The position numbers and the translations under genes are program-made. 64,000 nucleotides of DNA from Adineta vaga. Lineage: Eukaryota; Animalia; Rotifera. Under the pieces are notes generated by a model. It did no database searches, was not told the DNA's origin, and saw nothing but the letters and a program-made list of their open reading frames with translations. Positions within the stretch are counted from its first letter, which is position 1. Every line of letters starts with the position of its first letter. This document shows, one piece after another, positions 39,380 through 63,820 of the stretch. The stretch is taken from the NCBI GenBank assembly GCA_021613535.1, contig CP075497.1, forward strand, positions 5,518,001 to 5,582,000, in the 5' to 3' direction.

Positions 39380-39695
39380 TTGATTGCATTACTAGACATT
39401 TTCTTCTAATATGTTTTCAATAGAAAGAGATTTCATCTTGATATCAAATATAGACGAATGATTACAAAGAATATTTTCTATTATTTTACTTTTAAAAACG
39501 AAAAAAGGTTCATGGAGTAACGACATCTATCAGTAGGAATTCTATGATTGGTTCTCTGTCAACTTAATCTGAAATATGTGTGAATATTAGTAGTAGATAA
39601 AACAAAGAATTTGTCTCGTGAAATTTATTTTCATTTTTTCTCATTCTATATTTATTTTCATACGTGAAAACATAAACAATACCCATCGATCTTCC

Positions 39696-40725
39696 ATGTC
39701 TACACCAATTCTCAATCCAAATTCAACTTTGTCATCATCAATGAAGACAAATGCAAATGCTGGACCGACCGTATCACAATATCAACTTGAGCTTGGTCAA
39801 TTTCTTTGCAAACACGATCCAGCTGCTATACGTTTGTATGATTTTATCAATCACGTCAAAGTCTTTCGTTATAATTCAAGTGAACTTCGTTGGGAAAATA
39901 ATCCGTGCATCGAAGGAAACTTGTTTCTTTATAAACGACAACAGATCATAAATGATCAGATGTATGCAGTTTTTGCATTCGCTATTATTCATGAAGAACG
40001 AAATCTGATTCAGATAATATCCGATGATATGACTGAACAAGCAAACAATCAATGTCTATTCTATGAAATTAAAAGAAATAATCAATCTCTAGTATATAGT
40101 TTACATTTTTCGAATGAAAACGAATGTCTACGAGTACATAAATTTATTCAAAAACTATTACAAAGTATAAAAGAACAACAAAATCGTTTATTACTTCCCG
40201 GTGAACTTCAACAGAAGCAAATGCAAGCACAGGCTCAATTAGGAAAGGTCGATCAATTACAAACGACAGTGAACGTAAGTTTCTTACTTTCTTGAACTAA
40301 ATGATACTAAAATAATATTTCTTTAGAGACCAAATTCAGTGGCACAACAATTAGGACCTTCTCGACAGCCAGAACTTCGTATATCTGGACGACAATCAAC
40401 TCCAATCACGAACAGTAATGTGCGTAGCAATGATCAAACTTCATCATTGAAACGTTTATTAAATATTCCAAATCAAACTGTTTTTGATAATGAATCAAGT
40501 CTTCCCTCCACTCAAAACTCAGTAAATCTTCTTCCACCTTCTGCATTCGCAACAGTATCTTCATCAATGGGTGCTAATTATAGTGATAATCAATCGGTAT
40601 CGCAAACATATCCATCTAATCTATTAGATCGTGAACATTTACGAAATGTTCTTCTTCATCTTGTTCAAACAAATGATCAATTTATTGATATCATTCATCA
40701 AGCATGTCTCAACCATTCAACATAA
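39696..40725 (+). CDS. DCP1: mRNA-decapping activator DCP1 (EVH1 + C-terminal trimerisation helix), 2 exons
   Basis: LCKHDPAA..V..F.Y....WE...IEGNLFLYKR EVH1; SLKRLLNI helical motif; LLPPSAF; LDREHLRNVLLHLVQTNDQFIDIIHQACL. Confidence 0.85.
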
Positions 40726-40832
40726 TAAAATTTTTCTCGCTATCGTTGTTTCCATTTTGATATTTTAATAAAGAAAATATTTCTTTCTTTAAGAGTTAAA
40801 TAGAAAAAAAAATATTTTTTTTGTTAATCTAG

Positions 40833-43800
40833 ATGTCTTCTCCGGCGAAAACATTTCGTTCGCCGACAGTGTCCAATACTCCTGCATCACCAGCAACTTC
40901 TATTACCGATGTTCAAGATGATTTTCAAGCGTTTCAATTGCGTCCAGTCATACGTGATTTTAAATTATCCGCAGAATTATTTGCATCAAATGGTGATATC
41001 GTATTAATATGTGGAAGAGGTAATCAAGAAAAACAAGGCATGTTATTAGTATCGTATGAAATTTCATCGACAACAGCGTCATTAGCAGCATCTGTACGTT
41101 TACTTAAAGTTATTAAATTAGCAAAGAAAAGTGTGACACAACTTGAAACAATTCCAATACTAAAAATTGCACTACTATTAGGTGATGGAATTGTTAGTTT
41201 ACTTGATATTGATTCTCTTGCAGAGATTGCAACGGTAACAACAAATAATGTTACTTTATTTTCAACTTGGTATGTTATCTACATTGAAATATCAGTTATT
41301 TTAATAAGATCTTACTATTCATAGTATTATTAGATGATTTTGTTTTCATTAGGTATGAAATGGACTCTCATTCATCTTTACCTACCACTCCAATAACACC
41401 AACTGCTTCATCAATATCAACGAATCCAATATCCATTCCTACTGAACTTCGTATATGTGTTGCAACGAAACGTCGATCACTTGTTTTCCATCGTTGGCTA
41501 CCTCAACAACGACGTATAGAAGAAAATAAAGATGCACGTGGTAGTTTTGAATTAATCGATATTCCACGGGCTCTTGCATTATCACGTGAAAGAATTTGTA
41601 TCGGTTATAAAAAATCCTATTTCATCATGAATTTAGCGAATGGAACGATGATTACTGAATTACCTTTTACAATGGCACACGAACCAGTTATTAATTGTCT
41701 TCAAGATCGAACGCAATGGTGTGTACAAGTCGATTCAAATACGATATTTTTGAATTCAAATTTTGAACCTTTATATGAAAATGGAATTACATGGAAAGAT
41801 ATTCCATCTGCGATTGTTCAAGCAAAACCATATGTTCTTGCCCTAATGAATCAGTCTATCGATGTTTGTACATTCAATGGTTCTCAATCAGTACCTGTTC
41901 AACAGACTGCTCATAAGAATACAGCAGGTATTGGAAAATGTCGTTTATGGATGGATGCACGAACAGAAAGAATATATGCAGCAACGACAACCGATGTTGT
42001 GCTTCTTGAACCAATACCTGTTCGTATTCAATTGAAAAACTATACGGGCATGTATCGATATGATTTAGCATTGATTCTTATTCGAGCTGTACTCGGAATA
42101 TCTGTGTCATCATCACTCGATGATCAATCAAGAACAAATGATGGTCATGCAAAAGGAAATCTTAATACATCTATAATGCCTAAAAGAAAAACTTTTAACG
42201 ATAATGAACAAGCAACTGATCAGGTATGAAATTGAATTATAAAAAGACAATTGATTATCGAATGATTCTCTTTTTAGTCATCATCAGATAATTCTACATC
42301 TCGCGAAGGTCCTAAAAATGAATCCCGACAAAATAATCAAAATCTAAGTGAAATAGATCTTTGGAATGAATACTATCGTGTTGGAACTATGTATGCATTT
42401 CAATTATTTCATAAACAACAATTCGATCGAGCTTTTGCTGAATTCAAAGAATTTCTAACTGATCCGGCTGAAATCATTTCTTTATTTACTACACTATCCG
42501 CGAATATATGGTTAACCAATTCATATAACGAATTCAATACTTTTGTTAAACAACATCAACATTTTTCTGAACCAAATGATTTCATTGGACAAAAACTTGA
42601 AAATGCTGTACGTGAATTACAAAAATATTTGACTGAATCACGTCGAATTTTTCAAACAATTTTTCGACGTTCACCAGATGCTTGGCTTGAAGTAAGACGA
42701 TATTTTGAAGTCGATCAAACTATTTTTCTCTCTCTCCTATTATTTAGGTACAATCAATTGTACAGAATCGTCTTATATTAAAACCAGTTCGTGATTTACT
42801 AATTATAGTTGAAACTTCTTTACTTAAAGTATATTTAACAACAAATAATAATACATTAGCAAATGCATTATTACGTAATTCAGAAAATTGTTGTTTACCA
42901 TCTGAAGTCGAAAAAGAACTTAAAAAACATCATCGTCGAACAGAATTAGTTTCATTTTATGAGAAACAAAATCGACATAGTGAAGCATTAGATTTAATAA
43001 CTAATACTGATTCTTTATCTTCACGCGAAAATATCCTAAATTATCTATCTAAACTTGATACGACTCAATTACCATTGGTTTTCAAATATATTCAACCTAT
43101 GATCAAATCGGCATTAGACAATCATAACGTGATAAATCGGTCTTAGATGATATTTTACAAATATTCATTGGTGAATCAACACCTTTATCTTCTTCAACAA
43201 CAGATTCAGTTCAAATAGGAGCAATTAAATTTGATCCAATTCAAGTTTATGAATTTTTAAAAGATATCAATGAAGATTATGCTATTCGATATTTAGAACG
43301 TATTTGTTTAAAACCCGAACTTGGATCAAAACGACGAGATGTTCATAATCGAATAGTCTATGCATATTGCAATCGAATTAAACAATTATCTGAACAATTA
43401 AGACCAATAATCAAAGCGAATAGACAAGAAACTTATACAGGTATTCTTTTACATATGAAGAGTCATTGAGCGAAACTAATTTTTGATATTTTCATCATAG
43501 ATAATGATGTGTATGCCACTCGAATAATGACTGATGATTCGGAAAAATATTCTGCAGCATCATCAATAAAAAAACAACAGACTGAATATGAAGAGAAACT
43601 AAAATACTTTCTACTGAATCAAAATTGTCAATGTGATTATGAAAAATTAGAATCATACTTTCTTAACGAACAGAAAACGTCATCGAATGAACGTATATTT
43701 AGTTTACATTACGCAATTGTTCTTGGAAAATTAAATCGACATGAATTAGCATTGAAAATATTTGTTAACAATGGTTTTTATACTGATGCTGAATCTTATT

Positions 43801-44300
43801 GTGAAACGATCTATTCCAATGGTGACAAAGAATTAGCTCGTAATCTTTATCGACAATTAATTCAACATTATCTAGAGAAAAGTAATGATGGAAGTTTAAA
43901 TGATACGAGTTTAAAAGCAATCTTACGTATTGTTAATAATGCTTCTGAACGTCTTGATCCAGTACAAACATTAGAAATTCTTCCAGGTCAATTGAAATTA
44001 AACAGTATGAATGGTTTCATTGAACAATCATTACAAACATGTTTACAAAATAAACGAAGTTCACAAATAGAACGAAATTTATTATTTTCGAAATTACTTC
44101 GTACACAATCCAAACGTATTACTAGTGAAAATCATTCTTTTATTATTGATGCCGATTCTGAATGTGCTCGAACAGAATGTACTCAACCATTGACAGCAAC
44201 ACAAGCTATTGTCCGATTTCCATATAATAAGATCGTTCATTATTATTGTCGAGCAAAATATGAAAAAGAATTGGAAGAAAGAAATAAGAAACTTTATTGA
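40833..44300 (+). CDS. VPS39: Vam6/VPS39-TGFBRAP1 family HOPS/CORVET subunit (CNH domain, helical repeats, C-terminal zinc-finger-like region), multi-exon, apparent 1-bp deletion near 43127
   Basis: ICIGYKKSY, WKDIPSAI..PYVLAL, YAFQLFHKQQFDRAF..F..TDPAEIISLF, ETSLLKVYL, AIVLGKLNRHELALKIFV, VRFPYNKIVHYYC; VPS39 versus TGFBRAP1 not firmly resolved. Confidence 0.82.
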
Positions 44301-44412
44301 TATTTTTTTTTCTAGTTTTCTTTTAAATTAAATATGATTGTATAAATCTTTTCTTTATCTATGCTGTTGATTTACCGAGTGAAATAATTTTGTAGTTTTC
44401 TTTTGTTTCTAG

Positions 44413-45087
44413 ATGGATTTTGATGAATTTATTGAATCATTAGAAAGTTTACCCATTGATTTAAGCCGTAATCTTCGTCTATTGCGAGAACTTGATGATA
44501 AAAGTATATCATTGAAATCGGAATGTTCTACAATTGCAACAAAATATCAACAAACCAAATCTCGTGACGAACGATTTAATATCATACAAACATTAAATGA
44601 TCTACAATCTCGACGTTTATTACATGCCGATGAAAAAATTACACTCGCTAATCAAGCATATGAAATGGTTGAAAAACATATTCGTCGTTTAGATGATGTT
44701 TTAGAAGAATTAGCCAATCAACCCATCGTTGTTCCAGCAAATAATCGAAAGAAAAAACGAACAAATTCAACGACAGATGATATGAATCTAAATAAGAAAC
44801 GACGTAAAACAGATAAACCATTGAATCAAGTACAAAATAAAACGTCAATTAAAAAGAAAGATCAACATCAGGAAATGATGAAGGTGGAACCTGTTGGCTT
44901 AGATTTATTTCCTATTGATCCTTATGAACCACGGTATTGTATATGTAATCAAGTTTCATTTGGACGTATGATTGCATGTGATAATCCTCAATGTCAAATT
45001 GAATGGTTTCATTTTGCATGTGTAAAACTTGAAGAAGAACCGAAAGGCAAATGGTTTTGTGAGAAATGTCGACCAAAAACAATGTAA
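44413..45087 (+). CDS. ING: Inhibitor of growth (ING4/5-like) PHD-finger protein, intronless
   Basis: FIESLESLPIDLSRNLRLLRELD; ADEKITLANQAYEMVEKHIRRLD; PHD DPYEPRYCICNQVSFGRMIACDNPQCQIEWFHFACV..PKGKWFCEKC. Confidence 0.95.
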   Translation: MDFDEFIESLESLPIDLSRNLRLLRELDDKSISLKSECSTIATKYQQTKSRDERFNIIQTLNDLQSRRLLHADEKITLANQAYEMVEKHIRRLDDVLEELANQPIVVPANNRKKKRTNSTTDDMNLNKKRRKTDKPLNQVQNKTSIKKKDQHQEMMKVEPVGLDLFPIDPYEPRYCICNQVSFGRMIACDNPQCQIEWFHFACVKLEEEPKGKWFCEKCRPKTM

Positions 45088-45399
45088 CAAATATGTATTC
45101 ATGTAGAAATACCTCCGTATTTGAACAAAACAAAGTATATATTTTTCTCTCCTTTTTTTCCCCTCATGTTATTGTGTATTATTGTTATTCAATGTGTGTA
45201 AATACTTTATTTATAGAGAATATAATATATAATCTATATTGCGATAGTCTTCATATGCATCTTTTTCTGATAGGTTTCGTGAGGGTTGCTATTCTCTTCA
45301 TTCCTGATCGAAATTCACACTCAAGATGGTGAAATCTAAGATATATAAAAGATCATGTGTCATTATAGATAGTAGAATGATAATGATAGATTGATACTG

Positions 45400-48908: not shown

Positions 48909-49883
48909 TGAGTTGAGTGTCTATTTACAGGTCATAAAAGAAAACAAATCTTACATCTAAAATAAATAAACGTCACAAATATATTTTGTATGCAAAACAA
49001 ACGTATATCATTATCATAATCAAAACAGTAGAAAAACTCATTCGATAGATTTAATCTTCAAGTTTAACTTTCAATTATTTTATATTTCAATTCGAGATTT
49101 GATTAGCATTTGCAAACCTCACATTCAATATGAAGTACTAGAACAGATTAGATTGGTTTACATCTATATCAACTAGAATATGTAAAAAATGAATAATGAT
49201 CAAACGCCACCTATAGACAAGAAAAAACAACGCGAGAGTTTCTTTTTTTTTCTTCCGTTTGGGTCATTAGTAAAACGAGTCTCTATAAACTTCTCAAAAT
49301 AAAAACTGTACATATTGAAGTGAATTCTGAATCGAGGTAATGAAATTTGATGGAAAAAGGTTATATTTTCCATTGTTAATTTTTTCGAAACCCTTTTATG
49401 AAGTACAATCAAAGAAATGCAATGGCTTGTTGTCGTACCAGTCATCTCGTGTGAAAGAAAACAAAACAAGAGAATTACGAGATTACTTTTCGGATTAATA
49501 AATAAACAATCGTTCTATTTAAAAGAGATTTTATATAACATTTTCTAAGCATAATACATTTTCACTCATAGATTTATGAGGAAAAAAAAACATCTAGTAT
49601 TAAAAGAAAGATTTAGATTTTAAGACATTGTTTATACTTTTGACAAAAGCAATCGATAAAAAAAACAATCAGTTATTCACTATCAAAACTGATTGTCTAA
49701 GCTACGGATAATCATCATTTACATTTGTACAATAACGAAGAGCTATGAATTATCATATACGTCATGAGCTAGTATATTGAATGACATCTCAAAGTTTATA
49801 AAAAAAGAAATGGAATAATAATAATAATGAGGAGCACCAAAATAATAAACTAAAAAAACAATTTTATAAAAGTCCCAATCAGT

Positions 49884-61700: not shown

Positions 61701-63820
61701 TTATTTTTTTATTTGTTGTTCGAGTGTATGAATTTTATTTTCTAACAAAGAAGTTTTATGTTCTAATTGATTGATTGTATTTTGTTGTTGTTCAATTTTA
61801 GCATTTTCAGTCATTAATTGTTCAAGTAATTGATTATTCACATTGGGAACTGATTGAGAAGTAGTTAGATTTGTAATATCATTCGATGAATTTTCAGCTG
61901 TTAATACTTTTTGATCTTTCATATTTTCTAAAAGTAAATTTGGTGTTTGATCATTTGTTGATGTTGAATGAAGTAGTGGAGAAAGTAAATCATTATCCGC
62001 TCCGAATAGATCTTCAATTGATGTACCATCAGGTAGATTATCAAACATTAAATCACGAATGTTATCTAATGAAGATTGAATATGATCGACATCACCAGTG
62101 ATATCATCGAGTGAGAAACTTAATTGCTCAGTTGGTTGAGGATGTGATGGATTTTGTTCACATTTATTAGAATAGTCGATTAATTCTTGTTTTAATGTTG
62201 TTGGAATTTGAACTTGGTTGGATGCATTTGCTTGAGACTGAAAATAGAATAAAAGAATTAATATTAGAAAAGAATTTTTCATTGGAACAAACTAATAAAT
62301 ATGTACATAGAAGGAATTTTTGTCTGAGAAAGTGAAAATTTATGTTAAATAAACGGTATATTTTATTTTGTTAATGAAATACATAACTGTATAGTTTTGA
62401 AAGATGTATGACTATTACAATATTGCTAAGAAACACGCTGAATCATTAGTTACCGTTTTGGTTCCTGTTGGATTGACTCCATTGGCTTGTCCATTATTTG
62501 GATTGACACCTGCTGAATTATCTGTTCTCAAATAAAAATCTGGTGCGAAGGTATTTCTTGCATTATTTCCATTGCCAACTGGTTGAAATGTTTGATTTTG
62601 TGGAATATGATCTTTTTTTTCCGATGACCATCGATAGTCATTTCCTTGCTGCTGCTGCTGTTGTTGATGATAATGATCATCTGCAGTGTGTATTGATGGA
62701 GGCGGAGATGGAACGAGATCTACCAATGGTGATGCATTCGTTGCATGATGCCATCCACTTGTATCATTATCTGTTAATTCATTGATTGTTACACTTTGTT
62801 GACGACCAAGATTTGTTGGATGTGACACGTGCTGTTGTTGCTCTTGTTGATGAGTGTGTATTCTTTTATTTGGTTCTTCAGTATGCATAAGTGCAACATG
62901 TTTTCGTTTGAGAGAAGCTGGTGATGTATCTTGATCACTAAAAACTAACGGAGAATTATTTCCATGATGTTGACCATGTGCTTGGTTTGGATGAGTTGAA
63001 TCTGTAGTAAGACCTTCCTTAGTTGATTGTTGTTCAACAGATTGTTCAGAATGATGAACAGAATTTGCCGATATAAATTGAAGGAGAAATTCCATTAGTT
63101 TTGAAACAATGTGTTGTTGTTTACCATGCTTTTGCCTTAAAGAACCAATTTCACCCCATAATGCTTGATTTTCACTTTGCATATAGGATAATTTATCATT
63201 CAAAGATGTTTGTTTTGCTTGTAAACTTCGAACATCATGTATTAAATGCGAAAATTCTAGTGAACGACCTGATTTCGAATCAAGATAATCAGCTGAAACA
63301 AGTGCAGACGATGCGTTAGGACCTACAGTTAGAATAAACGTATATATTTATTTATTTGTAAAAATAAATCAATCTGTTCAATACCTCCTTGCATATTAGA
63401 TTTTAGTTGAGGTTCTGGTGCCCGTCTTTTGATTGATTCTAAAAGTGATTCTTGTCCTCGAATAAAATTTGGATGTGCAAATTCAATATCATCTCGTTCA
63501 TTTTTTAATGATCCATGTTCAATATTGGAGATTTTACGAAAACCATACATATTTAATTGACGTATAAAAGATGCAAAATTATTATGTTTAAAATATCTTG
63601 GTAAAATTTCACGTGAAAATCTTGATTGATCATAAACATGAAATGAACCACCTGATGGATCCCATGCAATGAGATCATCACATGAAGAATCATTGACAAG
63701 TGCCCATAATTTTGCTAAAAATGCTGTGATTGTATTTTGTGCTGTTTGACCTGATGGATGATTATATTCGCCATGATTTCCATCGCCTGAATTGGATGAT
63801 GAAATATTATTTGAATCCAT
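61701..63820 (-). CDS. HSF1: Heat shock transcription factor (DBD, HR-A/B, HR-C, extra C-terminal coiled coil); exons 63385-63820, 62454-63322, 61701-62237
   Basis: [47 protein letters not shown]; [33 protein letters not shown]; HR-C-like [15 protein letters not shown]. Confidence 0.96.

Follow-up and report, generated by a model that had tools for sequence, protein, structure and literature searches.

Spliced-leader (SL) operons in which the end of one message and the start of the next are exactly juxtaposed have been described in tunicates and nematodes. In operons of Ciona intestinalis without intercistronic DNA, the poly(A) tail directly followed the acceptor AG (..AGAAAA) in 19 of the 19 mapped cases, most of which had no AAUAAA within 40 nt (Satou et al., 2006; PMC1488885). 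The authors argued that neither mRNA end can be made unless the boundary is transcribed through, and that the upstream 3′ end might be a product of trans-splicing (PMC1488885). A minority class of Caenorhabditis elegans operons, the SL1 type, also has the poly(A) site abutting the trans-splice site (Williams, Xu and Blumenthal, 1999, PMC83895, cited via PMC1488885). For bdelloid rotifers, SL trans-splicing was described in 2005 (Pouchkina-Stantcheva and Tunnacliffe, cited through PMC1925144 and PMC2481426), but we found no report of rotifer operons in the literature searched; a 2008 table gives operons as "ND" for Adineta ricciae and Philodina (PMC2481426), and a later review has them as not reported (PMC7986045). 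In a 2025 paper, rotifers are only mentioned, with reference to earlier studies, as one of the lineages that have trans-splicing and operonic transcription (PMC12460157). In this work, we analyzed a 64,000-nucleotide stretch of the Adineta vaga genome (contig CP075497.1, positions 5,518,001 to 5,582,000, forward strand; hereafter the window), in which three functionally unrelated housekeeping genes, DCP1, VPS39, and ING, follow one another on the + strand and probably form a spliced-leader operon.

The stop-to-start gaps between these genes are only 107 and 112 bp (Table 1). Both contain a T-rich tract followed by CTAG and then at once by the ATG of the next gene (..aatctag before VPS39, ..tttctag before ING). 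The initial annotation of this DNA had described the three-gene cluster, its gaps, its motifs, and a splice-acceptor-like TCTAG end at the two downstream ATGs. All of its coordinates hold in the sequence, the gene identities were borne out by Pfam domains found exon by exon (PF06058 (DCP1) and PF16741 (mRNA_decap_C) for DCP1; CNH, Vps39_1, and zf-Vps39_C for VPS39; PF12998 and PF00628 (PHD) for ING), and both AG|ATG sites are conserved as splice-acceptor-like sites. The hexamers that it took as poly(A) signals are also present (AATAAA at 40767-40772 and ATTAAA at 44327-44332), but the tail sites seen in RNA follow them only after 60 nt (DCP1) and 80 nt (VPS39). For VPS39, the last base of an AATAAT variant is 24 nt before the tail site, and DCP1 has no canonical hexamer within 40 nt.

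The RNA evidence consists of assembled contigs, not reads, from three public runs (X1, X5, and X6) compared with positions 39400-45300. These runs derive from RNA because their contigs skip the GT..AG introns; a fourth, X10, is DNA because none is skipped. In X6, the DCP1 contig (record 21) covers 39702-40274 and 40327-40833 and then continues into 11 A's absent from the genome, and the VPS39 contig (record 23) covers 43316-43438 and 43499-44413 before another 11 such A's. The DCP1 and VPS39 messages thus span their entire gaps, and their untemplated A's start from the AG|A of the next ATG, so that at both junctions the poly(A) site abuts the downstream acceptor AG (tails beginning at 40832/40833 and 44412/44413). 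Neither junction tail is present in the DNA run X10. The genome continues past 40833 as ATGTCTTC and past 44413 as ATGGATTT; neither is A-rich, which excludes internal priming of oligo-dT on genomic A's. Because the upstream mRNA covers the whole gap, the gaps are 3′ untranslated regions (UTRs) of the upstream genes and leave no intercistronic RNA. The ING contig of the same run (record 24) ends at 45253 and then carries 13 A's.

Run X1 shows the other side of the second junction. Its ING contig (record 5, depth 27.2) begins at 44411, which is the AG itself, without extra letters. The X1 bin depth of 15.3 equals the contribution of record 5 alone, and 44325-44410 is therefore without X1 RNA. 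A k-mer graph breaks at this point, giving a contig that begins with the AG, if molecules have the AG in common and diverge immediately before it. Two sources would produce this, namely leader-joined (..AAGAG) beside unspliced (..TCTAG) RNA, or leader variants that differ at position -3.

The donor for such a reaction is abundant in this genome. Starting from what we took to be the 23-nt leader of bdelloids, we searched the whole 100.8-Mb assembly in six contigs and found it as a multicopy gene with a GT donor: GCTTATTACAACTTACCAAGAG with GT after it occurs at least 60 times, compared with 0 matches to a reversed-pattern control. This is the same 23-nt leader as in the bdelloid SL work (Pouchkina-Stantcheva and Tunnacliffe, 2005, as cited in the sources above). 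Many of the SL RNA genes are arranged as divergent head-to-head pairs about 156 bp apart (e.g., in L006 at 1340-1600, corresponding to G000:C1:2551158-2551338), and they cluster on C5 at 9.88-9.93 Mb and 10.91-10.93 Mb. Minor variants have A at position 9, A at position 12, or ends in ..AAAAG or ..CGAAGAG. The 3′ end of the leader is AG. Judging from these sequences, a leader joined at AG|ATG would make up the whole 5′ UTR of the downstream message and would place a G (purine) at -3.

The arrangement is conserved in other bdelloids. All three genes remain together in A. steineri (gaps of 65 and 95 bp) and in a bdelloid contig, L026 (about 116 and 118 bp), and DCP1-VPS39 is kept in Rotaria sp. 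Silwood1 and R. sordida, where a gap of about 110 bp ends in ttag|ATG. The AG|ATG at the VPS39 start is thus shared by A. steineri, L026, and the two Rotaria species. The VPS39-ING gap measures 82-133 bp in seven loci, and the junction gaps of the relatives together range over 65-133 bp. An AG stands directly before the ING ATG in nine of the ten Adineta-type loci, in gaps that are otherwise diverged; in the other one (L001), it is 2 nt upstream. Three of the VPS39-ING gaps compared have neither AATAAA nor ATTAAA, and the AG keeps its place with respect to the ATG, not to any hexamer. In the alignment of gap 1 (A2; Adineta and Rotaria), an invariant AATAAA block and the T-tract with AG|ATGTC are conserved, and the part between them varies in sequence and length. 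We considered whether the conserved gap blocks are operon signals used genome-wide and rejected this, as they are essentially specific to this locus; for this reason we read them as gene-specific 3′ UTR elements of the upstream genes. The unit ends with ING. In relatives, the gene that follows lies on the other strand (in A. steineri, a kinase on the minus strand).

In Rotaria, 1.1-1.3 kb separate VPS39 from the downstream ING, which has its own cag|ATG, and the stretch of about 1 kb from the end of the gap to ING (L050 10977-12054; L051 11125-12392) holds no open reading frame (ORF) of at least 45 aa. The first 16 nt after the TTCTAG with which the Rotaria gap ends are conserved between the two species, and 8 nt (CAACTTAC) are in common with the leader. 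This retention of TTCTAG may reflect either trans-splicing into a non-coding first exon of ING or a role in VPS39 3′-end formation. In Didymodactylos carnosus (L024/L025), VPS39 and ING are on the same strand but 2.4 kb apart; the ING ATG has no AG, and VPS39 has cag|ATG. One public Didymodactylos model fuses VPS39 with a KBP_C-domain gene. Contig L047, in which the gap and ING follow an intron-less 3′ half of VPS39, was examined as a candidate for a spliced dicistronic complementary DNA (cDNA). This was rejected because A. steineri DNA also lacks that intron and because L047 itself begins with intron sequence.

The placing of an acceptor-like AG immediately before the two downstream ATGs exceeds chance expectation, such a placing being rare in this genome. 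As a background, we sampled 264 kb (the window and four 50-kb blocks). Among the 123 ORFs of 100 aa or longer in this sample, 8 have a first ATG with AG at positions -2/-1. This frequency (6.5%) against a background of 4.6% for the AG dinucleotide led us to reject AG|ATG as a genome-wide habit. Only five ORF starts in the sample (at least 80 aa) have a pyrimidine tract and an AG immediately before the ATG, and two of these are the junctions described here. When the AG may lie up to 6 nt from the ATG, the number rises to only 13, and at four of these another ORF on the same strand ends no more than 300 nt upstream; again, two of the four are the junctions under study. Acceptor-like tracts 2-5 nt before the first ATG of a long ORF were observed in L034 near 1948 (minus strand; G000:C2:5020001-5030000) and in L038 near 6738 (minus strand; G000:C3:7010001-7020000), where an ORF on the same strand ends 104 and 44 nt upstream, respectively. 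By their sequence, these are possible further operon junctions. In the window, ..atttcag stands two bases before an ATG at 63820 and ..tttcacacgag directly before one at 49445 (both minus strand), and these may be candidate trans-splice acceptors of other genes.

Taken together, we favor DCP1-VPS39-ING as an SL-resolved operon of the type without intercistronic sequence, and consider this reading likely. Transcription would start upstream of DCP1 and run through all three genes. RNA coverage begins within 39597-39650, with depth 0 over 39400-39596 in the three runs and position 39650 covered by an X1 contig. The DCP1 ATG has no acceptor AG, and the first gene therefore has a genomic 5′ UTR of at least 46 nt. 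We infer co-transcription from a single promoter, and likewise that SL is added at 40833 and 44413, where the 5′ ends of VPS39 and ING would be made by trans-splicing of the 22-23-nt bdelloid leader onto the AG abutting the ATG. The tails of DCP1 and VPS39 are added at the same phosphodiester bond, as observed in X6, which makes each gap an upstream 3′ UTR, and ING terminates at the conventional poly(A) site at 45253 where its contig ends. The initial annotation had already proposed an SL-resolved operon. That part gains from the conserved acceptors, the SL RNA genes, and poly(A) addition exactly at the AG; the nematode design with intercistronic regions of about 100 bp, which it had assigned to the gaps, is contradicted by the X6 messages that fill them.

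The upstream 3′ end may be formed either by cleavage in competition with trans-splicing or by trans-splicing itself. By the latter route, the outron, carrying the whole upstream message, would be freed with a 3′-OH at the AG, debranched, and polyadenylated, so that one pre-mRNA could yield both messages and the gap blocks would act as signals. We regard this version as tentative and rather unlikely. If it were true, the exact juxtaposition would be known from three independent animal lineages, with rotifers joining tunicates and nematodes.

The layout of this locus is that of the Ciona and C. elegans SL1-type operons, not that of the SL2 type. As in Ciona, unrelated genes on the same strand are joined with the tail right after the downstream acceptor AG, the 40 nt before the tail site hold no canonical AAUAAA (the closest canonical hexamers here are 60 and 80 nt away), and one leader type would apparently serve all genes. 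In contrast to Ciona, the host belongs to Rotifera (Gnathifera) and has an unrelated leader sequence, and the upstream 3′ UTRs of about 110 nt carry deeply conserved gene-specific blocks; dicistronic cDNAs and SL joining are features of the Ciona operons and are putative here. The C. elegans SL1-type operons share with this locus the upstream poly(A) site that abuts the downstream trans-splice site and are resolved by a general rather than a dedicated operon leader, the use of a leader at the A. vaga sites being putative. They differ in the canonical AAUAAA that the worm has near the site, compared with the distant AATAAA of DCP1 (60 nt) and the AATAAT variant of VPS39 (24 nt). Points in common with the SL2 type are gaps of about 100 bp from stop to start, housekeeping genes of unrelated function, and an acceptor near the ATG. 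However, the intercistronic RNA of about 100 nt between poly(A) site and acceptor in the SL2 type is absent here. A dedicated SL2 leader is a feature of the worm, and the SL sequence variants in the A. vaga genome are known from genes alone.

Several observations weigh against an SL-resolved operon. No RNA contig bridges 40833 or 44413 in X1, X5, or X6; as contigs drop rare forms, the absence of such a precursor proves nothing. A leader joined at either position was found in none of the contigs and loose ends listed for these runs. A degenerate scan for leader plus ATG, made for both genes in metagenome and metatranscriptome data, returned five matches, all by chance and in long unrelated contigs. 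Exact-protein look-ups for RNA-derived contigs with the leader at the ING start found none; every contig obtained has the acceptor tract in place of the leader and was therefore judged to be genomic. Poly(A) addition at the AG is documented by one run, X6, and by its contigs, not by reads. In Rotaria, the VPS39 stop is still followed by the conserved gap including its TTCTAG end, without adjacent ING coding sequence, and this gap end may serve VPS39 3′-end formation too. A promoter inside the upstream gene is also possible. VPS39 and ING would then be separate overlapping units, transcribed from within the upstream gene or its 3′ UTR and trimmed by SL trans-splicing at AG|ATG, packed but not co-transcribed, in the manner of a "hybrid operon." Internal promoters are known in C. 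elegans operons, a TATAAA is present at 44341-44346, and the lack of a junction-spanning precursor contig in the three RNA runs would fit this explanation. Such a promoter must, however, sit inside the upstream transcribed region, because the branch point and pyrimidine tract of the acceptor lie in the 3′ UTR of the upstream mRNA. The absence of X1 RNA over 44325-44410 speaks against a transcription start near the TATAAA, and a tight layout kept across genera is expected of shared transcription. We consider separate units unlikely.

The remaining explanations dispense with trans-splicing or with the RNA signal. It is very unlikely, in our judgment, that the T-tract and CTAG are only the cleavage/polyadenylation site of the upstream gene, with near-leaderless downstream mRNAs starting no more than 2 nt from the ATG. 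Such a motif would account for tails that begin at the AG, for the X1 contig that starts at 44411 without extra letters, and for the Rotaria VPS39 gap that retains TTCTAG with no neighboring ING coding sequence. Nevertheless, the motif is missing from the last poly(A) site of the cluster, that of ING at 45253, it matches the 3′ splice sites of the introns of this locus (T-rich, ending in TAG or CAG), and the AG position is tied to the ATG, not to a hexamer. Near-leaderless nuclear mRNAs are not a known feature of animals. Alternatively, because they look like ordinary 3′ splice sites, the AG|ATG could be cis-splice acceptors for an unrecognized upstream non-coding first exon. This is scarcely plausible, as none of the joints listed for the three RNA runs over 39400-45300 leads into 40833 or 44413, even though all five internal introns were recovered, the gaps have no convincing donor with room for an intron, and the X6 contigs are colinear through both gaps. 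We find it highly improbable that the A-runs come from the X6 assembly or library and that the tight spacing merely reflects a compact genome. The single run, the use of contigs instead of reads, and the uniform tails of 11-13 A's would be consistent with an artifact of this kind, but two independent junctions fall at the exact AG|A (a chance of about 1 in 10,000 for gaps of about 100 nt), the third X6 tail is at a plausible ordinary site, no genomic A-run lies downstream of either junction, and the conservation of the AG is independent of the RNA data.

As an SL-resolved operon, this locus would be a conserved and partly RNA-supported case in rotifers with the Ciona/SL1-type layout, and would extend the coincidence of poly(A) site and trans-splice site at a single bond to a further lineage. 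It bears on the question of whether the 3′ ends in such operons come from trans-splicing itself or from competing cleavage. Annotation is affected as well: at junctions of this kind, gene predictors merge genes or cut them short, and a public model of Rotaria sp. Silwood1, for example, has VPS39 and ING fused into one 1274-aa protein.

Table 1. Features of the DCP1-VPS39-ING cluster, in positions of the window.
Feature	Position	Strand	Details
DCP1 5′ end region	39597-39695	+	RNA coverage starts in its first part; from RNA and sequence
DCP1 (mRNA-decapping subunit)	39696-40725	+	Exons 39696-40274 and 40327-40725; intron 40275-40326 (GT..AG joint 40274>40327 in three RNA runs); start ATG 39696, TAA stop 40723-40725
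Gap 1 (DCP1 3′ UTR)	40726-40832	+	AATAAA block, A-rich stretch, T-tract, CTAG
Acceptor AG at VPS39 ATG	40831-40832	+	Proposed SL trans-splice site and DCP1 poly(A) addition site
VPS39 (HOPS subunit)	40833-44300	+	Exons 40833-41269, 41353-42223, 42278-42691, 42748-43440, and 43501-44300; four GT..AG introns from RNA joints (41270-41352, 42224-42277, 42692-42747, 43441-43500); start ATG 40833, TGA stop 44298-44300
Gap 2 (VPS39 3′ UTR)	44301-44412	+	Conserved blocks at about 44328-44345 and 44367-44391 (the latter with AATAAT 44383-44388), T-tract, CTAG
Acceptor AG at ING ATG	44411-44412	+	Proposed SL trans-splice site and VPS39 poly(A) addition site
ING (inhibitor of growth, PHD-finger chromatin reader)	44413-45087	+	One exon, 224 aa
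ING 3′ UTR	45088-45253	+	Ordinary poly(A) site at 45253, away from any acceptor; end of unit

Upstream of DCP1, an ATTGG is found at 39547-39551, and the "CTCF-like motif" of the initial annotation at 39519-39530 is a loose resemblance only. No match to Rfam was found in the window at the gathering threshold. The best named relatives of the ING protein are from Adineta steineri (86%) and Didymodactylos carnosus, and no second (ohnologous) copy of the ING gene was found in A. vaga.

In exon 4 of VPS39, two bases of the window near 43128-43130 are absent from X1 and X5 (RNA) as well as from X10 (DNA), and these extra bases break the reading frame. This break probably accounts for the length of the public A. 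vaga model I4U23_029010 (706 aa, compared with about 1050-1070 aa in relatives), and the discrepancy may be either an assembly indel or a frameshift of the strain or haplotype. In the same exon, some contigs of X5, X6, and X10 (the DNA run) agree with the window over just two stretches, 42837-42855 and 43187-43207 (about 20 nt each), and then continue into unrelated sequence. These contigs probably come from another genomic locus with short similar stretches.

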